A stretch of DNA of 64,000 nucleotides from positions 63,922,001 through 63,986,000 of the forward strand of contig NW_026262723.1 of assembly GCF_021869535.1 (NCBI RefSeq), read 5' to 3'. The notes under the pieces were generated by a model. It saw only the letters and a list, made by a program, of their open reading frames with translations, made no database searches and was not told the DNA's origin. Below are positions 373 through 61,329 of this stretch, in pieces; position 1 is the stretch's first letter; each line of letters starts with the position of its first letter. This DNA is from Mytilus californianus (taxonomy: Eukaryota). A program made the position numbers and the translations under genes.

Positions 373-2932
373 AAGTGCCATATGCTCTGTTCATTGCTCA
401 TCAAAGCACCATTTGTACTAGAGCATCATTAAATTATCTAAATGCTTTATGACCATGCACTGCTCATCAAAGCATAATTTGTACTAGAGCATCATTAAAT
501 TATCTAAGTGCCATATGCACCATGCGCTTTCATCAAATCACCATTTGTACTAGAGCATCATTAAATTATCTAAATGCCATATGCACCATGCACTGCACAT
601 CAAAGCACCATTTGCACTAGAGCATCATAAATTAGTATATAAGTGCTATATGTACCATGCACTGCTCATCAAAGCACCATTTGTACTAGAGCATCATAAA
701 TTGATATAAGTGCAATATTCACCATGCATGGCTCATCAAAGCACCATTTGTACTAAAGCATCAATAAATTATCTAAGTGCCATATGACCATGCACTGCTC
801 ATCAAATCAACCATTTGTACTGGAGCACATTAATTCAACTTTATGTCATATTCACCATGCACTGCTCATCAGAGCACCATTTGTACTAGAGCACCATCAA
901 TTAATAAGTGTCATATGCACCATGCATTGCCCATCAAAGCACCATTTGTACTAGAACATCATAAATTAATATAAGTGCCATATGCACTATTCATTGCTCC
1001 TCAAAGCACCATTTGTACTAGAGCATTATAAATAGTATAAGTGCCATATACACCATGCACCACTCATCAAAGCACCATTTGTACTAGAGTAAGTGCCATA
1101 TGACCATGCACTGCTCGTCAAAGCACCATTTGTACTAGAGCATCATTAATTCATCGTTATGTTATATTCAACATGCACTGCTCATCAAAGCATCATTTGT
1201 ACTAGAGCATTATAAATCAATAAAGTGCCCATGCATTGCTCATCAAAGCATCATTTGTACTAGAGCATCATAAATTAGTATTAGTGCCATATGACCATGC
1301 ACTGCACATCAAAGCACCATTTGTACTAGAGCAAGTGCCATATGACCACACATTGCTCATCAAAGCACCATTTGTACTAGAGCATCATAAATTAGTATTA
1401 GTGTCATATGACCATGCACTGCTCATCAAAGCACCATTTGTACTAGAACATCATTAAATTATCTAAGTGCCATATGACCATGTACTGCTCATCAAAGCAC
1501 CATTTGTACTAGACCAAGTGCCATATGACCATGCACTGCTAATCAAAGCACCATTTTTGCTAGAGCATCATTAAATTATCTAAGTGCCATATGACCATGC
1601 ACTGCTCATCAAAACACCATTTGTACTAGAGCAATTGCCATATGACCATGCATTGCTCATCAAAGCACCATATGTGCTAGAGCATCATAAATTAGTTTTA
1701 GTGCCATATGACCATGCACTGCTCATCAAAGCACCATTTGTACTAGAGCAAGTGCCATATGACCATGCATTGCTCATCAAAGCACCATTTGTACTAGAGC
1801 ATCATAAATTAGTATTAGTGCCATATGACCATGCACTGCTCATCAAAGCACCATTTGTACTAGAGCAAGTGCCATATGACCATGCACTGCTCATCAAAGC
1901 ACAATTGTACTAGAGCATCATTAAATTATCTAAGTGCCATATGACCATGTTCTGCTAATCAAAGCACCATTTGTACTAGAGCAAGTGCCATATGACCATG
2001 CACTGCTCATCAAAGCACCATTTGTACTAGAGCATCATTAAATTATTTAAGTGCCATATGACCATGCACTGCTCATCAAAGCACCATTTGTACTAGAGCA
2101 TCATTAAATTATTTAAGTGCCATATGACCATGCACTGCTCATCAAAGCACCATTTGTACTAGAGCAATTGCCATATGACCATACATTGCTCATCAAAGCA
2201 CCATTTGTACTAGAGCATCATAAATTCTTATTAGTGCCATATGACCATGCACTGCTCATCAAAGCACCATTTGTACTAGAGCAAGTGCCATATGACCATG
2301 CATTGCTCATCAAAGCACCATTTGTACTAGAGCATCATAAATTAGTATTAGTGCCATATGACCATGCACTGCTCATCAAAGCACCATTTGTACTAGAGCA
2401 AGTGCCATATGACCATGCACTGCTCATCAAAGCACCATTTGTACTAGAGCATCATTAAATTATCTAAGTGCCATATGACCATGTACTGCTCATCAAAGCA
2501 CCATTCGTACTAAAGCATCATTAAATTATCTAAGTGCCATATGACCATGCACTGCTCATCAAAGCACCATTTGAACTAGAGCAATTGCCATATGACCATG
2601 CGTTGCTCATCAAAGCACCATTTGTACTAGAGCATCATAAATTAGTATTAGTGCCATATGACCATGCACTGCTCATCAAAGCACCATTTGTACTAGAGCA
2701 TGTGCCATATGACCATGCATTGCTCATCAAAGCACCATTTGTACTAGAGCATCATAAATTAGTATTAGTGCCATATGACCATGTACTGCTCATCAAAGCA
2801 CCATTTGTACTAGAGCAAGTGCCATATGACCATGCACTGCTCATCAAAGCACCATTTGTACTAGAGCATCATTAAATTATCTAAGTACCATATGACCATG
2901 CACTGCTCATCAAAGCACCATTTGTACTAGAG
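373..2932 (+). repeat. Tandem satellite of 51-bp and 66-bp related units with higher-order structure
   Basis: Core AAGTGCCATATGACCATGCACTGCTCATCAAAGCACCATTTGTACTAGAGC (51 bp) repeated with or without a 15-bp tail (ATCATAAATTAGTAT-type or ATCATTAAATTATCT). Left units are more diverged and slightly longer. Confidence 0.97.
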
Positions 2933-3521
2933 AGACATTGATTGTCGAAATGCGCATCTGGATTCAGAAAAATTGGTACCGTTTATGTTATTAAATACAT
3001 TTTGGATCTAAAACTTTTAATTTTATAACAATCTGGGATGTTACACATATTAAATTACCTTGTTAACATTAATCATAGCCATAACAAAAAAAACAGGGGA
3101 CAATGCTTTATTTTGGTCAAGGTATAGGGGATGATAAAACATTTCGGAGGAATTGCATTGATGGAATCAAAATGATTTCAAAGCCACATTATCAAAATGA
3201 CCTGCCCCTCCTTTCCCGGGTAAAAATTAATAAATCACTAAGTTACAAATTGTTCTACATATGTTGTATACGAACACAGACATGGTATATCGGAGTTTTT
3301 TTTTTATTTGAATGCAGATGCCTGGTGTAGTATCGACTTCTGTTAATAAATGCAAGGTCTAACTTAAATTCTATAATCTGCTATGTTCAGTACAGTCAAA
3401 TTAAATGTGTATATGTTTTATATGCATATGTGTCTTTATAAACTAGTATATACATATACATGTATAGTAAAAGGCTTGATTATTAGGAACAAGTCAATAA
3501 ATAATAGCAAAATATAATTAT

Positions 3522-3701
3522 TTAATTCATAAGTTTCCAAATATGTTTAGCGACATCTTTTGCGGTCTTCTTCAGATCACTTATTTCAAAGTCAATATCA
3601 GTCTGAAATCTATCCACACTTCCCTGGACACTGTATGTCATAAATGCCTTGGAAAAAGCAATTCGGTTCTCTGTTTTAATTGATAAAGGGTCGTACTCAA
3701 C
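3522..3701 (-). CDS. G1 exon 6 (terminal)
   Basis: tacag|GTT; VEYDPLSIKTENRIAFSKAFMTYSVQGSVDRFQTDIDFEISDLKKTAKDVAKHIWKLMN*; homologous to the terminal exons of G2-G4. Confidence 0.9.
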   Translation of the reverse strand, partial: VEYDPLSIKTENRIAFSKAFMTYSVQGSVDRFQTDIDFEISDLKKTAKDVAKHIWKLMN

Positions 3702-6700
3702 CTGTAATTACAAATTCATAATAATTATCATGCATGTAAAAAAAATTTGACAAGTCAATTTGTTTAAATTCAAATATAATGAAATCTATTTATTGCATGA
3801 TAGTATAAACCATGGTCGCCTAAGAGGCAGGATGACCAAGTAGTTTATATACCATGCCATAGTGGAAATATTTAAAGAGCGATTTTTCGCGTTTTTTTTG
3901 TTGCACTCGTGAAATTTTTCAAATATTTTTGCAAGTATATCCATAAAAAGAATTGTATTCAGACTAAGAATACCCTTTGCTGTTGAAGCAAGTCGTTAAT
4001 AATATATGTTTTATTGTAAATTTGTAATAAAGGATAGCATAAACAGAGACACATAGATGAACTTTAGGACATTGGGTCGTTGTGAAATATCCTTATAAAA
4101 ATAAAACCCACAAAAATATATAGAAAAGGGGGGGGGCAATGTGAAACGATCGCCATAAAAACGAAATGATGATGAGCTTGAAGCTATGATATATTTCACT
4201 ACGTTTTCATGGTAGGCTGTATTTCTTTCTATTCTATTTTTTTATCCTATATGCTTGATGAACATGGGAACTGGTTGGTTCACAGAATACTTCATCAGAA
4301 ATATAACTTACAAACCGAAGACGGTGTTTGTAAATTATTAACTTCTGAACCTTAAACTTCTTTCTGAAACAATGAATTAATGAAATTTGATATATCAAAG
4401 AACACATATTATTATTAAGATAAACAGCATAATTACTTTTGTTATGAGTTGGCTTTGGATGGTATTTATATAAAGTCCTTGTAAGTATTTGACATGCTCC
4501 AGGGTATTTCGTTGATTGTATATTATACCTTCTCCGCAAACTGTAAAAAAATGTGGACATATTTTTTGGGATGGTACTTTTAAGGGACCAAGAAGTTGAT
4601 GAAAATTTTGATGCAACTACGTTGGAATAGATCAACCAATATTAAGTAACCTTTATAGTGTTCAGTTTATAATTATTTTTTTTAAACTTTTTTGGGTGGA
4701 AGTATTGCATTCGACAAATGTCTTTTTTAGTCTTAAAGTATTTTTTAATTACTTTCTCATCGGCATGTACATGTACCCAACATTCTCTTTTTTCATACTA
4801 AACATATGTTTCGTTCATATTCTGAAATTGATTCGGGCATTGTAAGTGGTGTGGTTGAACTGGCCATGATTGAATAAGTGCAATTTCTCAGTCAATACAT
4901 TATGTTCATAAATTTAAGATTCAATCACTTAACCAAAGTTGACCTAAGTACCCTTTGATTCTTCTATGTTGACATTCTTTAATCAAAACATATAGCTCTA
5001 CGTGAATGTATAATCCTCGACTTTTCAGACGTTCCTGATGTAGTGAATTTAGAATTGTTCTGAACGCATGCAGTGAAATTTAGAATTGTTCCGAACGCAT
5101 TTACATATTTACTTTGATTTTCAAACCAGGGCAGTCCAACATTTACCGCAAAGAAGGATGTTTTTCCTTCAGATGGTACAATTATTAAATGCTACAGCCA
5201 TACATCTACAAATATTTTTAGCGCGATCATGACTTAATTCGGTATATTACAGGTAATTACCTATTGCTAGAATAGTCATTGTGTCATGTGACAGTCGATC
5301 AATTTTACCACAAACCGTACACTGGTCGTCACAGTCACGTTTCTCCACAGACACAGAACGCTTTCCAAATATACCTATAAGATCAAAAGATAATTGTTAA
5401 ATAAGTCGGCAATAACAGCGCTGTTCCTTTGCCTTTTGTGTGTTTTTTGCTGTGCATGTACTGATTTTGTGTCATGGATGGATACCCATATACTTGTTTT
5501 TCTTTTCTTATTTTTACAGACTATAATATTGAAATTGTTTGTTTACGACAAAAATCTCCACATAAGATCTAAATGACAACAACTGCAATCAAGAGTTCTT
5601 TCTTTTTCAGTTACTTATAAATGTTAGTAGCATAAAACTTCTATATTATGTAGATGTGTTGTACAATGTGGATACATTTGATTTTTTTCAAAGATATTCG
5701 CAGTGTCTTCTTCATTTTACCAGGAAAAAGATATCCAAAGCCAGTAAGAACAACACAAAAAACAAATGAACAATTATATTAGTCGTCAGAGATTAACAGA
5801 TGTAGAAACTGAACCAGACGCTCATTTTTACATTAAACAGATACAACGCAACAAGGATTTGTTAGTTCAATGAAAATGTATGCGCCAAAATCTTGTTTTG
5901 CTGATGATATTTTGGTTTATCGATTATGGGTTTCAATATAATACATAAAAAATGGTCCACATTTATCATTTAAGGGCAATAATTTCGATAAAGAGTCGAC
6001 TGAAGGTTTCTCACATTTTACTCATTTGCAGATCGTGTCTTGCTGATCATTTTTGCAATTTGAGTTTTTCTCTTATCTAAAACAGCAAACAAAAATAAGT
6101 CAAATGCCCGTCTGTTTATTCCTAATAGGAGTTATTGCCCTTCAAATACGGTTTTCACGATTTTTGATTTGCCTATGTCTATAATATCGAAGGCTATAGT
6201 ATAAAGAAATAAACTTAATGGGCAAAAATGAGCAGCTTGAAAAATCTACAAATAAGTCTAATGGCTGAAATTATCAGTCGACCCCCTTTGGAGTTATTGC
6301 CCTTCAGTGACAAGTATTACCTTTTTTTTATGTTTTTGATGAAAACTGTGTAAAGGAGACTTTTTATGCATGACAAGTTGTAAGCCCTTGTGAGAAATCG
6401 TTTTGAGCATGACTAGTTACATGTATAAACCTTTGTAAGAAATATGTAATAGTTATACACCGAGGGATAGGTGTGTCTGGATAAGAAACCCCGTCGGCCG
6501 GAGGCCGGAGGGGTTTCTTATCCAGACACACCGTATCCCGAGTAGTATAACTAACTTACACCCCATTCTAAACCCTATATTTGTTAACATTGATTATTAA
6601 ATGAAAAAAAAAAAAAAAACGATAGCATATTTATTGATAATATCAAACCATGATTTATAAGAATATTTTTTTTTGTTACATGAAACCCCACTAGTAACCT

Positions 6701-36036: not shown

Positions 36037-37601
36037 CCTCCAAATACACATTTATAGAAATACAACGTACGTTTGTTTTGACATGTTAAGTTGTATACTA
36101 ACGCATGTAAGTTGTCAAAACTTTTGACATGATTTACCTTAAAACATTTCCTTATTTACAAAATTTCATTCAGACAATGTAATACTACAGATGACTTGTC
36201 ATAAAAATAAATCATTCACATTTATTTTGTCTAAATAAGGAAGTATTCATATATTTTACTGGTCATCCTATACTTCGAATGGGTCGACTGAGAATTATTT
36301 AGACAGTTAAAACAATGACAAACGAAATAGCTTTTTACGTGTATTTAACTCTTGTGTTGAAAAGAGACACATGTATGTGTGTCTTGCAAAATTGTAACTA
36401 TCTATGTCTAATCGTCACATTTGTTTGGGACATCTGATACAGAAGCAAAGGATACTAATGCGTCCTACTTTATCTCGTTGTTGCAACCAATAATAAGCAT
36501 CCACAATTTGCCGGACAATTTACTTACGTCATCAAATCGGTTACGTGAATTTGATAGTATTTGCAAAGGAAAACAAGCATGCTGTATATATAAACACTCG
36601 TACTCTACTGTAGGGTAAAAAAAATAGAAGCCAATACAGATCTAGACTTTCTATGTTCTATCATCAATAGATTCGTATAGCGTTTTGAATAAGAAAGAAA
36701 AAATGGGATCTTCAGCAGTTTATGAATTTAAAATAACTAGGGTTTCTATTTCTAGTTAAAATACTCTTAGTCATCCTGTTGGCTTGAGAGTTGTTTCGGA
36801 GTTAGAATCAGTGATTTTTACAGGTTTACAACACTTGTATCCTCCGTACCATAGTTAAATCATATGTCCTTTTTGGTTCGTAGATATAAAATATTATATG
36901 TGATATATAATTACATTCTGCAACGCGGATAAGGTAATTATTCGTATTTTCTTTTTTTTTCTTTGGAAATGCAACATATAAAAGACTACAGTAAATAATT
37001 GATGTTTATTGTAAGTAAAACGTAAAATACAATTAAAAATACAATTAAACAAAAACAGGATAGTAAAAAAATATCACACCCACAATTTCAACAAGCATAT
37101 TTTAAAACATTACACACAATTATATTGATGAAGACATATTGTCATTTTATTGCACATTTTTCATTTTTATATTAGTCTGAAAAGTCTGTTTGCCAATTCC
37201 CGTAATTGACCCTGTAATTAGAGATCCCTTTTTTAGTTGTCTCCCTTAGGAGGGACATCAATTTTTATTAACAATGGAGAGCTAGTGGAAAGAGCAAATT
37301 TAAGTGTGCATAATGTGTGTAACCTTTACGTTTTTCAATTTTTTAATTACATTTAATTTGTTGTTAAGGTAAACACTTTGGATAACCGAAGTTATTATTC
37401 ATTAACAATTTGTGAAATCGCCGATATATCACTTTCAACTTATCATGCTTTGCGTGGGCAAAAGCCAAGTTTGTCCGGTATAGAACTAGTCTTCGATTGA
37501 CAAAGGGATTCCGAAAGTAATTTGTTAAAAAATTGTGTAATAACAGAATCAAATCGGTAATGGGCAAATGGACTATTGACTAATTGGTCTATGTAGTAAC
37601 T

Positions 37602-37784
37602 CTAGAACATTTTAGCTAATACGTCTTTTGATATTTTTATGGCCATGTCATCTATGTTAGAGAATTGAAATAGTCCGGAAAGTTGAAATCGTTTCTTGAT
37701 TTTGTCCGTTTGGAATGTAATAAAGGATTTCTTGAAGGCCATTTTCCCGCCAACAACAACAATACTGCTAGTTTCATATTCCAC
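37602..37784 (-). CDS. G4 exon 6
   Basis: tttcag|GTG; VEYETSSIVVVGGKMAFKKSFITFQTDKIKKRFQLSGLFQFSNIDDMAIKISKDVLAKMF*. Confidence 0.9.
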   Translation of the reverse strand: MEYETSSIVVVGGKMAFKKSFITFQTDKIKKRFQLSGLFQFSNIDDMAIKISKDVLAKMF

Positions 37785-38160
37785 CTGAAACAAAAAACAT
37801 AAAGTACAGGTTATTGTAGTTATCAATTTAAAATGTATTATTATAAAACATTAGTCGTGAAAGTAAAAAAAAATCAAAATACCAATGCAAGAAGACAATC
37901 ATATATTGTAATTTAATTAAGGCTATTCAACAATAACAATGCTGTTGTCTGTTAAACTTTGATTTAAAGATTGGTATTTGTTTATTTTTGTAACGACTGT
38001 TTATTACACGCAAATCTGAAGCTGGAGGTGTCACATCACTAATTCAACCAATTAGCATTGAGAACGTAGGTCAAAGTAGCCCAACTTTGACAAAACATAG
38101 TGCTTTTGTTTACTAAAACAAGAAAATGAATTGCATAAATGAAAAAAAATATGATGAATT

Positions 38161-38195
<35 letters not shown>

Positions 38196-41100
38196 GGCTC
38201 ATTTAACTTGTCCATGAATTTTCAATGGAATATTTAGTTTAATGTGCTACATTGTTTTGCTTATTGTGATATAAGTTTAATTTAGAATATACCTGGTTTT
38301 CACAAAGTTAACGTTAGGGTAAAATATTTAAAGATCTGTGAAAATTCAAACACTTGGTTGAATATAGGGCTTTGGGATTGGTTGAATGAGACCTGGAATT
38401 ATTTGGATTCTGAAGAAATATAGTTAGGTTATAAATTTTGAAGAAAAAATATAGTTTGTTTAGAATCTTGGTCACCGTAGGGAACTTGTCGCACCAACAG
38501 AACTGAAATTGATCCATACACAAATTTTCATATTTTTACATTTTTATAGTGATTCAATAATGGTTAGTTGTTTTGTAAAAGAAAGTAAATAATCAGTGGA
38601 GCATGTTGAACATGAATCAGTTTTAAAGAACAATAAAAAAGTCTATTAGCCTGTCCTTAATTGTTAAAAATCGTAATTACATGCAAAAAATAAGTTTGAG
38701 AATGGTTGTGTAAATGAAACGGTAATTGTATGTGCTGTTCATTAAATATTTGCTGAAATAAAAAATCATTAACATCTAGAAAAAACCTGTTGCAAAAATC
38801 CTCGCATGGTAAAAAAAAGTTCCTTATGTGTTTTATATCTTTATTTATCATTTTGACTCTGAATGTTCCTAAGGAGGGCAAAATATAAAAGTGTAAAAAT
38901 GCATCAAAATTTTGCGTTTTACTTTTATTTACAAATAAATTCACAAAATACAGATTTTATATTAGGTAATATTAATTCAATATGTAAACTTAACTCTACA
39001 CTGCATTTTTGTATAAAAGAATGATCCATACAGTTTTAGTTTTTTTAAATTATTTTAAATCTATAACAGAAGTGATGATCACCTTTGCATTTTTAATACA
39101 TGTTAATATACAAATAATATTAGTAATGGGTTTTATTTGTCGTTAGGTTGCTGTAGCAGTGACGTTTACCCCACATCTTGTTTTATACATAATAAATCAA
39201 GGTCTGGTCGTTAATATGATCTCAGATATATTAACATCCCATTTTATCCGAAAAGGGTTATACATGTATAAGCAAAATAACCGTTGTAACAATAAAAAAA
39301 AACAAAAAAAAATTAATCATACTAGTTATGACTTCATAATGGATTGTATGATATTAAGATACTGATAAAATGTTTACCTTTGTAACTACAGGTTTATCAA
39401 TAATGTAGTTGTATGTGTCTTCTAAACCTCGCACTTTGTCAAATATCTGTTTCTGTCTTGAAACAAAACTTGACCCACATACTGCAAATTAAGGAGAAAA
39501 ATGTATATAATTTAGATACCATCCTTTTTATTCTTTACATTGCCTTTTATTTAAACTTCAAGCAGAGAAAATATTAATTCTCTATAAATTCTCGTTTGTT
39601 ACAAATGAAGTATAAGCGGAGGGCATCAAGTCATTTCTTCCAAAAGTCAACAATCTAATATAAATAGACATGTTTCACATTGCTATATGCACTTACTTTT
39701 TCCAACTATTTGTTCTTCGGTGTTCTTATTTGTATCAAGTACATTACAAACTGGACAACTGTGTACACATCGTTTTGCAATCAAATGTCTTGTGGATCGT
39801 TTTCCAAAAAGTTCTGAAAGAGAAAATACCAAAATTGTCGAATAGTGTAATATCGTGATACGAACAAAACAAATTGGATCATTAAAACTTGCATTTAAAA
39901 TTAGATAAACATTTAAAAATAAAAGGGAGATGCCAAAGGGGGACTTGCTTAATATATCTTGAAAATCTATGAAAAAAAATTTCGACGGCCAATTATTTAT
40001 TAAAATCGTATGAATTCAAAACGTTATTGTTATCAATCATCACGAAATAAAATAAAAAACGTTAATTGATTTCGATTTATGCAACTATAAATTAATAAAC
40101 ACATTTATCTATTTATTATAACATACTTTTAATTCCACCCCAAATCTTTTTGCCAGTTCTCTTGATACCGTGTCCAACTTTCTTGCCAAATCTGCCCAAA
40201 CCTCGTCCAATATTTTTACCAAATCTGCCAACACCTCGTCCAATTTTCTTTCCAATTCTGCCAACCCCTCGTACAATATTTTTGCCGATTCTGCCAACAC
40301 CTCGTCCAATATTCCTGCCAATTTTTGCGACTCCCTTTCCTAATCTTTTAACATGACTTCCTATTTTTGATCCGATTTTCTTAATCCCACCTTTAACCTT
40401 ATTTAGAACTCCTCCAACTTTTTTTATGGTACGTCCAACTCCTCCTCCAATTTTTTTAAAAAACTTTCCTATTTTCTTTCCAAATCTAGCAGCTTCCTTT
40501 CCCACTTTCTTACCAATTTTACCAATGAACTTAGCTATTTCTGGAACAGGTTTGATCACTGTTAGTAACTTTCCTATGTCTGGTCTAGGTATTCTATGAA
40601 GAATACAAAAGATGACAACTTCAAATATTATACTAGTAATACTTAAGTTATATTAATTGGCTGTCAAATATGGTATTCAAACATAAAACACTGCAAATAT
40701 GTTATGTTGTTAACAAAAACACATTATATGTTTTGGAGTTTAGTGTGACGTCCATTTTCACTGAACCAGTACACAATTTTATTTAGGGGCCAGCTGAGGA
40801 CCACCTCCGGGTGCGAGATTTTCTCGCTGCGTTGAAGACCCATTGGTAGCCTTCGGCTGTTAAAAAAGAGGGACGAAAGATACCAGAGGGACAGTCAAAC
40901 TCATAGATCGAAAACAAACTGACAACGCCATGGCCAAAAATAAAAAGACAAACAGACAAATAATAGTACAGATGACACAACATAGAAAACTAAAGACTAA
41001 GCAACACGAACCCCACCAAAAACTGGGGGTGATCTGCTCTTTGGTCGGGTTGTTGTCTCTTTGACATATTCCCCATTTCCATTCCCCATTTTATTCCTCA

Positions 41101-43036
41101 GTCAAAAACCATTACTGAAATTAGCTTCAAGTCTGAGACAAATATTATCTTTCCCTGCTGAATGTATACATTCAACACATAAAAGTGTCTCATATATATT
41201 GAAACCTAACGAACAACAGACATGTGTATCACTCGAGTTTCTTACACAATAAAAGGTTGAGTATTATGTAACATTCAACGTGTTCTGTTAAAACGTGTAC
41301 ATGTATGAAAAAAATGCCGAGTAAATCACCTCATCAAATTATGTGTCTGTAGTAATTAAAAAAAAAGAGAAGAAAGGGATATTCAAACTCACAAGTCGAA
41401 AACAAACTGACAACGCCATGGCAAACATTTTAAGACAAACAACAGTTTTAAAAACACAACATAGTAAACTAAAGACTGAGCAACAAGAAGATAACCTTGT
41501 ATTTAGGCAAAATTGGTACTATAATTATCTTAAAGAGAACATATTCCTGATTTCAAGATGATAGGTCTATACAGGAGACAGACTTCAATATATGACTTGT
41601 CACTATAAAACCTTGTAATAAGGGATCAGTTTTTGAAACATTTGAGGTAATATTTAGCTTTCAGTATGTTGTATTTAATTCCAACATAATTACATTTTCT
41701 TGAGTTGTTTTGCCTAATCAATATATCAGTTCTACTTACTCCGGATCCTGTGCACAAATATTGCCATGACATTCATCACATGCCTTTATTGTTCCGTTAA
41801 CTTTAGTTTCACATGATTGTGTTAGAATCTGCTCCTCATCTGCCGTGTCTTTAATCTCATCGACGATATAATTAAGAATATCTGCGCTTGTTTGGTCGTT
41901 TATTACTGAAATATTTAAAATTTCAAATTATTTAAGATATTGTATTAATTTCATAATATCTTAATTATTTTAGTATAAATTTGTGTAAGGTTAGCTATAC
42001 TCCAATTCGTGAACTATTCTTTAAAAATTGTGGTAACAAGAAATTGAACAGGGAAATAAACTGCCTTCTGATATTAAAATGATAGTTGACTATTGTTTTG
42101 AACGAAATAGCTAATGCGTCGACAATAATTATTTACATATACTTATATTTTCCTGATTCCCTATATTGCCCAGCAGCTACAGTATAAACAAAATGGAAAG
42201 GATACATTGTAGATATAGATGAATAAACAATTATAAGCAAGGAACAGTGGTTTTACTGATGTTCTTAATCCTGCTATGTTTGAGGTCTTTGACAATAATT
42301 TGAAAAGATCACACCTGTAGTCACTAATAAATAAATTGTTTAATCAATTAAAATAAAGAATATGTGTTGGATGCACGTTAGACAAAAATCTAATGAAAAC
42401 GAGAAAAGAACCAACTGTTTAAGAATTGAATAGCGCTGTTATTGTCGTACTTCATCTTTCATGAACATGTGTTCACCAATGACCCAAAGCTCACACCTCA
42501 ACTTATATAGATAGGACAAAATGGCCAATAGCGCATTGAATATAAGCAACATGAGCGTGAATAAATATAATATCCGTAGCACAACCCGTCTTTTTTAAAC
42601 AACCTCCATCAGCAACGCTTCAGACCAGAAATATACAAAATAAAAAGAACAACTTTGAATAAAACATCCTTATAATTGTGATTTTGTCGATTAAAAATTT
42701 GCACCTTATAGTTTTTTTCATTGTTACAATAATTTATGTTTTTTTGAGTTAAGAAGTATAGTTTATTTTTGAAGTATTACAATTTAAGATTAAAAATATG
42801 TGTTGCTAAACTTTAAATAATTGTGGGTGGACTGCATAAATATATATTGTAATGTAAACTTGGTATGATAATATTTACATGCATATTAATAAATCAAAAA
42901 AATTAATCGGCTTAAAGACAAATAATAATTCTTAAAAGTTTAACTTACTATCCAATTTATTTTGTTGGATTGAGAGTAATTCTCCATTGCAAGTACAAAG
43001 TGCTGCAACTACTGCCACGAAAAGACGAATGGACAT
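37602..43036 (-). CDS. G4: family paralog with strongly cationic cassette, 6 exons, 374 aa (candidate antimicrobial/cytolytic precursor)
   Basis: join(43036-42949,41905-41740,40593-40127,39813-39697,39481-39378,37784-37602) = 1125 nt; GT-AG, phases 1,2,1,1,0, open frame. Confidence 0.93.
38163..38192. repeat. (AT)15 microsatellite
   Basis: Pure AT dinucleotide run. Confidence 0.95.
39378..39481 (-). CDS. G4 exon 5
   Basis: 104 nt; (I)CGSSFVSRQKQIFDKVRGLEDTYNYIIDKPVVTK|gtaaac. Confidence 0.9.
39697..39813 (-). CDS. G4 exon 4
   Basis: (K)LFGKRSTRHLIAKRCVHSCPVCNVLDTNKNTEEQIVGK|gtaagt. Confidence 0.92.
40127..40593 (-). CDS. G4 exon 3 (Lys/Arg/Gly/Ile 11-mer cassette)
   Basis: tcatag|A ATA CCT AGA ... 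GGA ATT AAA A|gtatgt; 467 nt; 33-bp DNA periodicity at about 40190-40325. Confidence 0.93.
40733..41092 (+). mobile_element. Nested repeats: PLE 3' end split by a family-B fragment (40862-41033)
   Basis: ...CCTTCGGCTGTT|insert|CTGCTCTTTGGTCGGG... rejoins the consensus seen intact at 31945-31970. Confidence 0.8.
41740..41905 (-). CDS. G4 exon 2 (acidic pro-segment + Cys cluster)
   Basis: 166 nt; (I)INDQTSADILNYIVDEIKDTADEEQILTQSCETKVNGTIKACDECHGNICAQDP(E). Confidence 0.92.
42949..43036 (-). CDS. G4 exon 1 (signal peptide)
   Basis: MSIRLFVAVVAALCTCNGELLSIQQNKLD then A|gtaagt. Confidence 0.9.
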
Positions 43037-43086
43037 GTTATATGTATTACAAGCTGGATGATGTTGTCGCAGATTTTAATGTATTC

Positions 43087-43093
43087 TTATATA
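43087..43093 (-). promoter_or_regulatory. Candidate TATA box of G4
   Basis: TATATAA about 50 nt upstream of the ATG. Confidence 0.5.
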
Positions 43094-44459
43094 GCAAAAT
43101 TACGGAATTTCTGAGAACTAATTAACATAAAAACAAACCTATTGAAATTTACGTGATATGATTAGCCAACTGTGTTTATAACACCAAGGAATGTTTGTGT
43201 TTCATTTGAGTTGGATATTTGAAAAATATACATTTTTGCTTCACTATCATTTTTTACTTTCACGAAAAATTAGATTTTTGTTTTTAAAGTATGTTTTCAT
43301 ATCTTAAAGGATAGAAAATATCAGAATTAGTTTTAACTTAAATGCACAAACCTTTTACGTACCCCAAAGGAACTTATGTAATTTTACCGCATGTACATGC
43401 TAAACAATGCGATTACGTACTTGTCATATTTATAATGCATTATTTTTGTTTATATATTTCTTGGGAAACCACATCGAAATGGATTTTTTTAGCTATTGAT
43501 GACATTTCAAATGCGTATTCTTATATGTTTAAATGTTTTCAAGAGTCGATAATAAAATAATATTCCCTTCACTTTCACAGATGTATTCTGTATCCTGTTG
43601 CAGATCAAACCTACTTAATCTTGGCCAAATTCACATGTACATGAAGATTTTCAAATACTGTAAGAAGATAGCAGTTAATTAAATCATGTTACACTCAACA
43701 AGATTAACACAATATGACTGAGCATCGTTAACAGAAAACAATAGACTTAATATTCAAGGTCAAATGCAATTTTATCTCAGCATAGTGTATTTTGTTATAT
43801 GGTCAAGAAGTACTTTGTATACTAGTATTTGTAAGATGGTTCAAATAAGATCCTATCATGAATAAAAACAAATATGTTCCTTACATAATAAGCGAGAATT
43901 ATACAAACAACAATGAAAACCAACTTTATTATACTACTCTGGCCGCCACCAAGTTTCTAATTTTGTTACAGACATTATAACCGCCACAGGTCCTAGCTAC
44001 ATGTAAAATATTGTCTATCTGTTAAAATGGTTTTGTTATTTTTCTGGCCGTGACACCTCGTACTGGATATAAATTTCAACTACATGGAAGCTGAAACATG
44101 CATAAAAAGGTATAAAACTCAAAGAACTTTTTTCTATGATGTCATGTGAAGAATTCGTTCAAAAACCACCGGTTATTCTCTATTGAAAACTGTTCACTTT
44201 CTTTTCGTCCTATATTTTTCGCCTTGCTGTTGTCTGTCCTCTGTATAAAATTGAAGGCTGCTTTAAGCCATCAAAATTTGAGCCAATAGTTCTCATCTAC
44301 CTTTCAATTGATATATCCGTGGAAAAAGGGAAAGGAGAATTTCTCAAAGAAGCATCGTCTGTGCCTGTGCAAAGCTACAAACCTAACTGGAGTATAAATA
44401 AGGAAATGTTATATGATGCCAATAAGACTATAGTCTAAGCAATTTTAAATCACCGTATG

Positions 44460-56412: not shown

Positions 56413-59400
56413 CTTGCAACGGGTTGATTCAATAAACCTATAAATGTAGAAGGATGACAAATCATGCTTAAAAATTGTTCAGGAAAGGTTAGCACATATT
56501 TAAAGCTAGAATAGCCATTTCGGTGATTGAACTTCACTTTTTTGTTTTAATGGACAACTGACAAATGCCATGAGTATTATTTTAACACCATCTAATTATC
56601 ATACCTCATCAAAAAGCTACTTGCCATCACATAGCGAGATATATCGCTCACTCATATTAGTCAATCTTCAGGCTCTATTTGACAGTAGAAAGGCGAATCA
56701 ATCAAAGTTTGCAATTTCAAAGAGAGGAACATTAACAATAATACCACATCGTACTATTTATATAAAAACGTATTTTACGGAATTTTAAAATCATAACTAA
56801 TGAAGCTAGGTGAAATATATCAGGAACCTGACTTGTTGGTTGCGGAGAAATATGTGACGACAATTTCATAGTATGTGCATGTTCAACATATCTTTATAAT
56901 CAAGTTGGCCATAGACCACTATTAATTTTCCTATCATTTCTTTATTACGTTTTTTCACATTAAAAACAAATTCACCTGCCGATTCGCAAAAGTTTTGGTA
57001 TGTGTAATGTACAGTACAAGTCTCACATTATATCCAACATTTAGGAAAATCCCAGCTGTGCAGGTAATTAATTTAGCCAAAACACATCCATACTGGTATG
57101 GACAAGTCAAGAGATGTTCCGAAAACTATAAATGTTTTTTTTTTTATAAAATAAATCTTTTATTGCACATTTCTCTGCTGTTTTTACAACTTACTCGACT
57201 CACAGTATTCGGTCGAGTATCCCTGTAAATTAGTTTAACCAGGGAGATTACACAGTACAAATTATATATATCAAATATGGTTAGTTATACAATACATTGA
57301 TTTTGACAATTTGTTTTTGAAGTCTTTGTTATGTTACGTAATTACGGAAATTGTACTATCTATTGTCCGATATTGTTTATAATTTAGTCGTTGACCTAAA
57401 CCTTGATCAAAATATTTCCCGTGAAAGTTGAGATGATGATGTCGGATGATTAAAGAATACCACGTGTAATGATCATGAGAGCAGAAGGTTCTCAAATAAG
57501 TTTTTCTAATGGTGAGTTTTGGTAATATTTCCATTTTTTTATAATAAATTTATAGAAAGAATCATGATTTATCCTAGAATATCAAAGATTTTTCCAGTCA
57601 GTAGACAGTACAGGGTCAATGTTCAATAAGCATGTTGTACAGATAATCATTGATTATTCATCACATTTAAACACACACATGTGTCATCTTAAAATTTCGC
57701 AGTTGTTTACATTTCATATAAGTTATCCTACATGATATGTATAATAATACTGAAAAAAGAACATCTACAATATAAACATGGTTATTATATATTTTTATAA
57801 ACATCATTCTATATAAATGTTACCTGCAACTGGCCTAATAACTCAATCCCACTACTGAATAGTTAAAATAAAGAATAAAAAAATTATTTTAACTCTTTCT
57901 TTCATTTCCACTCTATAAAAACTAAGAAATGAATCAGGAAGGCAGAGAATAAAAATCAAGAAGAAATAGACTATAATAACAAGGAACTATATTCGTCTCG
58001 GGACAGTATTCTAAACACATCTTTTCGGCAAACAGGAAGTATAACATAGAAGGAACTGCAAACGTGTTGCAAGGTATGGCATTACGAAATGAAACTGTGT
58101 ACCATATATCAAGATAGTAGGCATTGAATCTGTCGACAAAAATGCGTCAACAATGTGTTTCGGGAAAATAAACGCACACACGTACGTAAGAACGGACAGA
58201 AATAAAACCAATATACCCCTATCTTTTGGAAGGGGTATAGATATACTCTGTTAAAATGTACATTCTTTCTACTTACTTGATAGTATTATTTTCTCCTGTT
58301 TATTCTTGTAAATATTGAGTCGATCACATTGCGGACAATGCTTCCGCACATTGTTTTTTTTTTAGATGTCTGATTGATCGTTTACCAAAAATACCTGAAA
58401 AAGAACGTGATATTTATTTCAGCTTTTCAAATTTAGTTTTAGTTTTCATGAAATGTAACTGATTAAGTTACGTTTAGACGAAGGTACCTTTTCGAAGATA
58501 TACCATCAGCATTGAATGAAACTCATGTTATTATAATTCAAAATAAGCAACTGGAGGGGTATACTAAGTGGCTATTATCTGGCCCCTAAAATTTCAAAAA
58601 AGTAGTAAAATTCTCCAATGCCTAAAAATCATCTTAGTTCCATTGATAAATGAATAGGGTTATGTAATGTGGAAACTGTCAAACAAAAAATGGTAGTCGT
58701 TATCTCATAATTCAGAATGAACTTGTCCTAATTTACACATTTGTCTCTCTGTTAATGTCTGTTGTACACGAAGTGTTTGGCCAATTTGGACATGACTCAA
58801 GGCCTCCGAAAAATGATAGTTTAAGCACATTTTTATATCCAGTAGCAATCTGTATTCTTGTGACCTTCAATTTAACCCCTTAGCTTGAGTTGGGGTTACG
58901 CATAAACTGGGCGTGTTCATTTTTTAAAATGAAAAGAATGTCAACATTGAAAATGAAATAATGGTCAACCATTTTGCTGACTGATTCAATCCACGAAGAC
59001 TCATTCTGATGCAGGTTAAAACGATGATTAACATATTTTTTAACCTATAATATGAAATCAAACAGACCTAGAAAAATCCAACTGCACGTGTTCACTATTT
59101 CTTTATACATGTATCTATATTTATGTTTATATCGGGTTATATGACCGTCGGCAGTCTTTGGTGGTTACCTCGATGATTAATTAAATGGCGTCTAGACTAC
59201 AATACACACGAAATGCTGATACATATTATCGAATCCATGCATCGTAAATTGTTTATTTTAGACTTTTTATCATTTGGATATACGTTTTAGTATGTTATGA
59301 ATAGGATATGAGAACTTTAGTCAAATCGGTGAACATGAATTTGACAGCTAATACCCCTTTAAACATTTTATCGTATTTTTAAAATTGTATTTGACTGAAT

Positions 59401-59724: not shown

Positions 59725-61329
59725 GTATTATTAATCAATATTTCCCTAATTATCGAATATTGATTTTTGCAAATTTGGTAATGTCTGTTGAAAAACAATA
59801 TTGAGCTATTGTTGTGCTATAATGATACCTTTTAAGTGGTATCACAATCTTACTTGTAATGCCACCCTCAGTTTTTCTACCAGTATTCTCAGCAACTTTT
59901 CCAATTGTTTTACCAGTGTCAACAATACCTTTTTTAACCTTATTAGCCTGTTCTTCAGCTTGTTTTATCATCCATTAATTTTCCAAGTGACATCTCCGTA
60001 CCAATATTAATTAAGTTTTCTATCTCGATTTTTTACCACATATCCGAACTTAACAGCTTTTGCAACAGGTTTGTTAACTACGTTCAGCAGTCCGTGGATC
60101 ATATGTGCGTTTCTGGTGGTTTTTAGATATTTTTAATAATCTCCTTGAAATAATAAGTATAATTATAATCGCTTTAATGACTATTGGATCAGTAAAATTT
60201 AATTAATTATAATAGAAAAATATCAATTGTTCATAGATCACTATTTTTCCAGATTCATTTTTTACACTCTTTTATCTTTTATCGCAGTATACCATACTGT
60301 AATTGACATATTTAATAACTTTTACGACCTGACTTTATAGATAATTTTATTATTCTAAAAAAAACGTTGCAACTCCCTTAGGCTTTAGGCAAAGATGATC
60401 TTTGAATCGATTTTGATTGATATGAATAGGCTTTTTTTTGTTATGATGCTTCGAAATTCTTTTTACTTTCTATTACTTTCATTTGATTGTTGCTGAAATT
60501 GGTAGACTTCCGTTCCGGCATGATTAAAATGATATCTGTTAACTGTTACTTTTGTTTATATTTTTTTTTATTGTGCTAAATCTTTCACGCAAAGTTGTCC
60601 TATTGATATTTGATTCTCTGGTTTTAGTGTCTCCTTAACAGTTTTGAATAAGGTTCATCACAAACATCATCGATTTGAGTGTACTCAATGAATATTACTC
60701 CAGGAACAGGTATCATGCGCTATCAAACTTATTACTCAACTCTTTTAAGGTGCATTGTATATTTTTATGACGAAGACGTGACGTAATAATAATGATGATG
60801 TATATATCAGTTTTGGAGTTTTTTGTTTTTGTTTTTATAGCTACATCTGGTTACTGGTGCACTGAAATTGTAGTCATGATCGTTCCAAACAACTTTCACA
60901 GTCACTAAAATCATCTGGAAGCTTAAATACATAAAGAGTAGCTGTATATGTTATATAACTTCAAATACACATGAATAGATGTATAATAATATACATTTGT
61001 ATTGACATGTAAAATTGTATACTAACGCGTGTAAATGTCAAAACACAATATACTAAAACATTTTCTAATTTATGAGAATTTATTCAGACAATATAATACT
61101 TCAGATGACTTGTCATAAATATAAATCATTCACAATGATTACTTCGTCTTACTGAGGAGATGTGCATCTGTATAATACCTACTGATCATCCCATATACAT
61201 TTATTAAGCAGGGAGTGTGCATTATCTGGTATGGGCGATCGGGAATTATCCAGATAGTGAAAACAATGAAAAAATAAATCACTTTTAATGTGAAAATTAC
61301 AACACTTGTGTTGATAAGAGATATACGTA

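Follow-up and report, generated by a model that had tools for sequence, protein, structure and literature searches.

We analysed a window of 64,000 nucleotides from the mussel Mytilus californianus (RefSeq assembly GCF_021869535.1, contig NW_026262723.1, positions 63,922,001 to 63,986,000 of the forward strand), in which a six-exon gene on the minus strand, here called G4, encodes the 374-residue protein LOC127707779. The gene belongs to a secreted Mytilus family of at least six genes in tandem, for which there is neither a Pfam family nor a relative with a name. The original prediction picked out a 13-residue segment of this protein, TGKKIWGGIKKLF, which is flanked by Lys-Arg (KR) pairs and followed by glycine, and read it as an amidated short cytolytic helix that had converged with the scorpion peptide IsCT. 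We arrive at a different emphasis. With moderate confidence, and relying on sequence conservation and on analogy with vertebrate clusterin, we suggest that the GKR behind this segment and a second KR further on form the convertase maturation site of a secreted protein of two disulfide-linked chains, in which the segment would be the end of a long helical tail and not a free peptide.

The translated coding sequence of G4 matches letter for letter the database protein P0153, labelled 'uncharacterized protein LOC127707779 [Mytilus californianus]', and GT..AG borders are present at all five introns. Exon 3 ends with ACT GGC AAA AAG ATT TGG GGT GGA ATT AAA A, followed by GTATGT, and exon 4 opens after TTTCAG with AA CTT TTT GGA AAA CGA TCC ACA AGA CAT. 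Removal of the 313-nucleotide intron between them leaves a split codon (A+AA) at the 40127/39813 junction that encodes K241, and the junction product reads HGIKR-TGKKIWGGIKKLF-GKR-STRHLIAKR-CVHSCPVC. Among the sequencing runs that we aligned over 37550-43500, run X1, which carries the same species label as the window, gave a contig of 1211 nucleotides (word depth ~747) that joins 37550-37782, 39376-39481, 39697-39810 and 40127-40324 (exons 6, 5, 4 and 3), and a second contig of 358 nucleotides that joins 40473-40593, 41740-41905 and 42949 onwards (exons 3, 2 and 1). Because the introns stand at zero depth in X1, this run is transcript-derived, and exon 3 is unbroken within transcript contigs, at word depths of 747-4251. 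The aligner left the triplet ATT unplaced at the joint between exons 3 and 4, where it replaces GTT of the window (39811-39813); since ATT stands for GTT, the joint runs exactly from 40127 to 39813 with a single base different (CTT to TTT, L242F), and the transcript of the X1 individual reads KKFF-GKR, a second M. californianus allele. The spliced contig and the identity with P0153 confirm the splice and the translation on which the original prediction was built. In all, the X1 transcript differs from the window by two amino-acid changes (L242F at 39811 and N269T at 39729) and six silent ones.

The word depth over the exons of G4 is 750-4250 in X1 and ~2.5 in X14, a run of the same study, and it is zero across all of them in the RNA raw-read run X21, of which 6% was read. 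LOC127707779 is thus abundant in one RNA-type run and nearly absent from two others, a contrast that suggests expression strongly dependent on tissue or state.

A large HMMER search with exon 3 returned one true relative, P0001, the other 152 matches being compositional, to proteins rich in Gly and Lys, and a word search with this relative led to full-length relatives from M. californianus, M. galloprovincialis, M. trossulus and M. edulis. Neither the HMMER nor the word search, both of limited sensitivity, turned up a homologue outside Mytilus. We aligned seven homologues, G4 included, that represent four Mytilus species and three paralogue lineages. The columns G232, K233, K234, W236, K240, F243, G244, K245, R246, S247, T248, R249 and H250 are invariant in this alignment, as are K254, R255, C256, S259, C260, P261 and C263 further on. 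Column identity is 0.93 for GKR-STRHLIAKR and 0.80 for the 13-mer, compared with 0.57-0.59 for the rest of exon 3 and 0.57 for the N-terminal scaffold, and no part of the subfamily is better conserved than the string TGKK[IV]W..[IF]K.[IL]F-GKR-STRH..KR-C. The 13-mer is therefore under a constraint that runs unbroken through GKR, STRH and KR into the cysteine ladder, and the N-terminal boundary of the 13-mer lies outside it.

At that boundary the seven homologues disagree. The pair that precedes the 13-mer is KR in G4, KK in the M. galloprovincialis orthologue, KN in the M. trossulus orthologue, KK both in the M. californianus paralogue G6 and in its orthologue, and EN in each of two orthologues of the paralogue G5. 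Position 230 therefore reads R/K/N/K/K/N/N (K in P0154 and N in P0155, with the E-N pair in P0158 and P0162), the upstream KR occurs in one of the seven, and three have no dibasic pair there at all. The genomic contig of a relative, X6, carries R230K, G237S and I239F. Over 456 nucleotides of X6 (exon 3 with 27 nucleotides of intron), the 16 differences listed, of 17, comprise eight amino-acid and eight silent changes, and three of the eight amino-acid changes fall in or beside the 13-mer, at exon 3 positions 40133, 40139 and 40159. As judged from the sequences, the helix exon is one that evolves quickly. K229-R230 falls where the consensus of an 11-residue repeat (GRGVGRFGKKI units) has G-R, and we infer that the upstream KR arose by a species-specific G-to-K change at a repeat position and is not a conserved cut site. 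The pattern of a prohormone, with conserved basic sites on both sides and a glycine, is not found here: the C-terminal G-K-R is invariant, and the N-terminal pair varies. The description of the 13-mer as flanked by KR accordingly holds for this genome, where the pair stands at both ends, although upstream it is unique to G4.

The 13-mer is also continuous with what precedes it. The 140-residue domain that it closes is made up mainly of G, K, I, R and V. The hydrophobicity spectrum of this domain has its maximum at 99 degrees per residue (amplitude 0.71), and the domain forms a coherent amphipathic helix in which three turns take ~11 residues. To our knowledge it is among the longest and most regular of cationic amphipathic helices. 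The 11-residue register can be written as GRGVGRIGKNI / VRGVGRIGKKI / GRGVGRFGKNI / GRGLGRFGKKV / GHGIKRTGKKI / WGGIKKLFGKR, and the phase of the hydrophobic moment is -43 degrees for the 13-mer and between -37 and -49 degrees for the units across residues 170-235. The 13-mer continues the 140-residue helix in register and is its conserved C-terminal end. The 33-nucleotide tandem array ends just before the KR and the 13-mer, and the number of repeat units depends on the species, with orthologues of 430 residues as against 374 here. We also considered the 13-mer as the last, degenerate repeat and ruled this out, since the block shows stronger conservation than the repeats and falls outside the DNA tandem array.

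The same domain (residues 104-243) holds nine KK and two KR pairs, with GKR immediately after it, and two of the KK pairs lie inside the 13-mer itself, so that any choice of which dibasic pairs are cut is arbitrary. It could be supposed that the cationic domain is a polyprotein, diced at many of these pairs into short Gly-extended cationic peptides, among them the 13-mer or its halves. The nine G-K-K or x-K-K sites and a conserved V-K-R167 would serve for this, several of the cuts would leave a C-terminal Gly (..FG-KK, ..IG-KK), and likenesses to several helical antimicrobial peptides are seen in different registers of the domain. However, the second basic residue switches freely between K and N from unit to unit and from orthologue to orthologue (GKKI alternates with GKNI, and the relative has K201N), so that the pairs are not kept; the units have no spacers; the amphipathic phase holds over 70-140 residues, a coherence that selection acting on short pieces would not call for; and the paralogues G1 and G2 share the scaffold with an exon 3 that is not basic and has no internal dibasic sites. 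On this evidence we regard such dicing as doubtful.

The paralogues were found by exon-wise tblastn against the window, and the matches were read out; all of them lie on the same strand as G4 (Table 1). Common to the family are C-x10-C-x2-C-x4-C and an N-x-[ST] sequon in exon 2 (the cysteine spacing and the sequon of G4 recur in G1-G3), C-x3-C-x2-C in exon 4 and a Cys that opens exon 5. In G4 this amounts to 4+4 cysteines whose spacings mirror each other, C-x10-C-x2-C-x4-C and C-x3-C-x2-C-x17-C. Exon 3 is a cassette that varies: G1 and G2 have it rich in Gly, Ser, Leu and Asp without a basic character, that of G3 is mixed, and that of G4 is polycationic. Exon 4 opens with IFGKR in G1, G2 and G5 or with LFRRKR in G3, although exon 3 of these paralogues is not cationic. 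Because the motif stands at the start of exon 4 whatever exon 3 encodes, LF and GKR belong to a motif that is older than the cationic helix and independent of it, and LF-GKR did not evolve together with the 13-mer.

Two further observations concern the paralogues. Over 3525-33795 of the window, which holds G1-G3, the charge of the cassette varies while the cysteine ladders and FGKR stay fixed. In G5 (58260-58430 and 59740-59975, minus strand), exon 4 has a frame break between the codons for the first and second ladder Cys, and the M. californianus equivalent of the 13-mer is without the invariant residues (TGRKTEGGITSIF vs TGKKVWGGIKSIF in M. galloprovincialis and M. edulis); to judge from its sequence, the G5 copy seems to be in decay in M. 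californianus. Within G4 itself, two stretches of intron 2 (40734-41131 and 41331-41529) have enormous depth in every run, RNA and DNA (up to ~1e6 word depth, in X6), with many internal joints and loose ends. They are a very abundant interspersed repeat that is also transcribed and has no relation to the exons of G4.

Table 1. Features of G4 and its tandem paralogues in the window
Feature	Position	Strand	Remarks
TATA-like box TATATAAG	near 43090, ~55 nucleotides upstream of exon 1		read from sequence
Exon 1	42949..43036	minus	ATG at 43036; signal peptide MSIRLFVAVVAALCTCNG; joint 41905 to 42949 in X1 contig; matches P0153
Exon 2	41740..41905	minus	acidic helix region; first Cys ladder C61-x10-C72-x2-C75-x4-C80; N-glycosylation sequon N66-G-T
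Exon 3	40127..40593	minus	Pro-rich linker, then 140-residue Gly/Lys/Ile/Arg amphipathic helix domain (residues 104-243, net +43)
DNA tandem array	40172..40321		33-nucleotide unit, 4.5 copies, 82% matches; encodes GRGVGRIGKNI units
K229-R230 (upstream KR)	40158..40163	minus	would-be N-terminal boundary of 13-mer
T231-K240 and first base of K241	40127..40157	minus	exon 3 share of 13-mer (TGKKIWGGIK)
Last two bases of K241, L242, F243	39806..39813	minus	exon 4 share of 13-mer; L242 polymorphic (F in X1)
G244-K245-R246	39797..39805	minus	in 7/7 homologues; candidate convertase and amidation signal
S247-T-R-H-L-I-A-K254-R255	39770..39796	minus	directly N-terminal to C256; STRH and second KR invariant; no stretch of the protein is more conserved
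Exon 4	39697..39813	minus	includes second Cys ladder C256-x3-C260-x2-C263
Exon 5	39378..39481	minus	C281 and predicted helix
Exon 6	37602..37784	minus	C-terminal domain: predicted strands, final helix; stop codon TAG
G1	~10.9-3.5 kilobases (kb)	same as G4	exon 4 start S-IFGKR-SVSVEKR-DC
G2	~20.2-15.9 kb	same as G4	exon 4 start H-IFGKR-C
G3	~33.8-26.9 kb	same as G4	exon 4 start R-TLGKLFRRKR-C
G4 (LOC127707779)			exon 4 start K-LFGKR-STRHLIAKR-C
G5	~60.1-54.2 kb	same as G4	exon 4 start S-IFGKR-SIRHLKKK
G6	window edge	same as G4	last exon only

To assess the likeness to IsCT, we recounted the identities and obtained the same number as the original prediction, 8 of 13 positions; the equivalent 13-mers of the seven homologues share 8, 7, 6, 7, 5, 7 and 7 positions with IsCT, and the X1 allele shares 7. 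With the composition of the 140-residue domain, the chance of at least eight identities is p = 3.7e-6 per 13-residue window, and a window with at least 8/13 is held by 0.055% of 20,000 shuffled domains (5.5e-4), against IsCT alone. The likeness exceeds composition for IsCT alone; this comparator, however, was selected in hindsight among the thousands of cationic helical peptides on record, a choice for which the p values are not corrected. In physical terms the 13-mer makes a good cationic amphipathic helix: its mean hydrophobic moment is 0.61, compared with 0.60 for IsCT, and 2% of its own shuffles reach 0.61. IsCT is the amidated peptide ILGKIWEGIKSLF-NH2, released from a 68-residue precursor that consists of a signal, the peptide at 24-36, GKR and a propeptide (PMC4360471, PMC11289363). 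The mussel segment has in common with it an amphipathic cationic helix with the core K-I-W-x-G-I-K-x-L-F, then G-K-R, and a secretory precursor, and the parallel between the two Gly-Lys-Arg triplets that had been drawn earlier is borne out by the sequence and by these descriptions.

The two systems also differ. Mean hydrophobicity is 0.41 in IsCT and 0.09 in the mussel 13-mer, and net charge is +1 and +4; IsCT begins with I-L, whereas the mussel 13-mer begins with a polar T-G and holds three Gly. The IsCT peptide directly follows its signal peptide, whereas in the mussel protein the signal peptide reaches to about residue 18 and the 13-mer begins at residue 231 of 374, inside the 140-residue helix. 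In place of the acidic C-terminal propeptide of the scorpion precursor, the mussel protein continues after GKR with STRHLIAKR and then with a Cys ladder and a Cys-containing domain of 119 residues (net charge +5), for which a low-confidence model predicts helices and strands. Homology to the scorpion peptides was rejected, the precursor layouts being unrelated; we found no homology to scorpion precursors, and convergence, as first proposed, remains the appropriate term.

If the likeness were taken at face value, convertase cuts after K229-R230 and after G244-K245-R246, followed by carboxypeptidase action and amidation, would release TGKKIWGGIKKLF-amide, a cytolytic or antimicrobial helix convergent with IsCT. 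Such a product would accord with the KR at both ends in this genome, the invariant GKR, the secretory protein, a hydrophobic moment equal to that of IsCT, and the 8/13 identity (p = 5.5e-4 vs IsCT alone), and the (near-)invariant mussel residues K234, W236, G238, K240, F243 and GKR are largely those common with IsCT. Yet the mussel 13-mer, unlike IsCT, depends on an upstream cut site that is not conserved, being present in one of the seven homologues, at a repeat position, with three lacking a dibasic pair; the two internal KK pairs, the low hydrophobicity with a polar N-terminus, the precursor layout and the second allele, KKFF, speak against it as well. We consider release of the free 13-mer quite unlikely. 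The amphipathic cationic helix, the GKR, the signal peptide and the conserved sequon support the amidated short cytolytic helix originally proposed, and a separate 13-mer is not supported, given the upstream KR in one homologue, the family-wide LF-GKR and a helix in phase with the preceding 60 residues. The IsCT-like 13-mer is probably no separate product, and it should not be put forward as a new bivalve antimicrobial peptide unless mass spectrometry proves it.

Likeness to short membrane-active helices is not restricted to IsCT. In a control comparison, residues 215-236 match the sheep cathelicidin SMAP-29 (PDB 1FRY) at 11 of the first 18 aligned positions (E 0.039, PDB chains), and this match spans the proposed KR cut. 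The two share a Gly/Lys/Arg/Ile amphipathic pattern; SMAP-29, however, has 29 residues and is freed from a cathelin proregion, whereas in the mussel protein the pattern is repeated over 140 residues within a disulfide scaffold, and the match is likely convergent or compositional. Residues 213-241 (~40127-40213) also match the N-terminal membrane-penetrating amphipathic helix of VP5 of bluetongue virus, an orbivirus (E 0.4, with RFGKKVG identical), which is probably chance or convergence. The domain would thus appear to resemble several membrane-active helices in several registers. Phe-Gly-Lys-Arg is in addition the classical signal for a C-terminal Phe-amide, as in molluscan precursors of the FMRFamide type. 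Molluscan precursors of amidated neuropeptides contain many short units, each between conserved basic pairs, whereas the mussel protein has one conserved FGKR and no conserved upstream pair.

We return to the two-chain reading of the double basic site, for which the invariance of both basic pairs and the flanking ladders argue. K-R and R-R-K-R are typical sites of furin and other proprotein convertases. A convertase would cut after the invariant GKR and again after KR255, nine residues on, and STRHLIA(KR) would be excised, to be lost or to serve a role of its own. The two mirrored Cys ladders would keep the two chains linked, in the way of vertebrate clusterin, and the N-chain would keep the polycationic helix as a free tail ending in ...KKLF-Gly, which a carboxypeptidase and an amidating enzyme could turn into ...KKLF-amide. 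The helix tail would do the work, attaching to membranes or polyanions much as helical host-defence peptides do, and it would act as a chain of ~225 residues, not as a 13-mer. A compound version may also be considered, in which the TGKKxW..xK.xF-GKR-STRH..KR module frees and amidates the ~140-residue +43 helix from a clusterin-like clamp, and the M. californianus G-to-K change lets its last 13 residues be shed as an IsCT-like amide. We think this version very improbable; if true, a small cytolytic peptide would here be in the course of arising out of the end of a larger effector.

A different interpretation is that the protein stays a single chain, and that F-GKR-STRH-x-KR-C serves as a hinge in the structure or as a binding motif beside the disulfide domain. 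The invariance of STRH, which a cut-and-discard spacer would not need, fits a protein that is not processed; so does a predicted M. trossulus isoform, P0157, that skips exon 4, and single-chain clusterin retains much activity (PMC12527946). This interpretation leaves unaccounted for two invariant K-R pairs, with R-R-K-R in G3, at the same place in a secretory protein, and we hold it to be unlikely. In P0157 (LOC134727041 isoform X2), exon 3 is joined straight to exon 5 (..TGKKIWSGFK-ICGSDF..), and LF-GKR, STRH and KR are missing along with three of the four cysteines on the C-side; if real, it would be a form that can be neither cut nor clamped.

To place the protein among known families, we ran the database searches of the spliced model exon by exon and used P0153 for the whole-protein steps. 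Pfam gave only sub-threshold low-complexity matches (suprabasin repeat, chlorosome CsmC) for single exons and whole database proteins. Sequence and profile searches of the PDB returned no clusterin chain, only SMAP-29 (weak) and designed coiled coils. The ESM Atlas, searched by features and by shape, gave nothing usable, Foldseek against the PDB found nothing at E <=0.001, and a full-text literature search with four family peptide strings gave no match. The AlphaFold model, built from the seven-sequence alignment, predicts at low confidence that the N-terminal part forms a long helix, that helices follow the second ladder, and that a sheet and a helix lie at the C-terminus. In an exhaustive structural search (VIA-align), human clusterin, 7ZET_A, ranks fourth (Z 5.9, root-mean-square deviation 3.5 A over 105 residues, model residues 18-374).

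Several points weigh against a two-chain, clusterin-like protein. The clusterin family PF01093 is not matched at E <=1 with whole proteins or at E <=10 with single exons. The mean predicted local distance difference test (pLDDT) score of the AlphaFold model is 48.8; values of 60-72 are confined to residues 30-80 and 260-374, those for residues 118-258 fall under 50, and the 7ZET match is within noise for helical models, its Z of 5.9 being tied with unrelated helical bundles and its Foldseek E being 1.2. In clusterin the second ladder lies ~58 residues past the cut, whereas the mussel ladder follows at once. The strong conservation of TGKKxW...F upstream of GKR is equally to be expected of a conserved bioactive peptide, and the KK that three homologues have at the N-terminal boundary can be cut by some convertases. 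Finally, cleavage at GKR/KR, disulfide pairing and amidation are all predictions.

What we consider worth keeping is a secreted mussel family, with a transcript that is abundant in one run, in which a swappable exon encodes a cationic helix beside an invariant double basic site. Were the helix to be released and amidated, the protein would be a host-defence or surface-binding effector on a clusterin-like plan, and if this is true it would be of interest for invertebrate immunity and for the origin of short antimicrobial peptides.

[quoted passage not shown] The clusterin fold has three domains: a coiled coil, a disulfide domain and an alpha/beta roll. The mussel family resembles clusterin in the signal peptide, the N-glycosylation, the mirrored Cys ladders that flank a candidate basic convertase site, and the domain with strands and helices. 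In both, a poorly conserved stretch of biased composition lies beside the cut, which for the mussel family is a predicted one, and in clusterin this stretch is the working part. The two differ in the number of cysteines, 5+5 in clusterin and 4+4 in the mussel family, and in the nature of the variable stretch, since the clusterin tails are hydrophobic and Phe-rich, whereas that of G4 is a regular amphipathic repeat with a charge of +43. We do not file the mussel family as a member of the clusterins; by analogy, and with the same order of parts, clusterin would be the nearest model for how it works.

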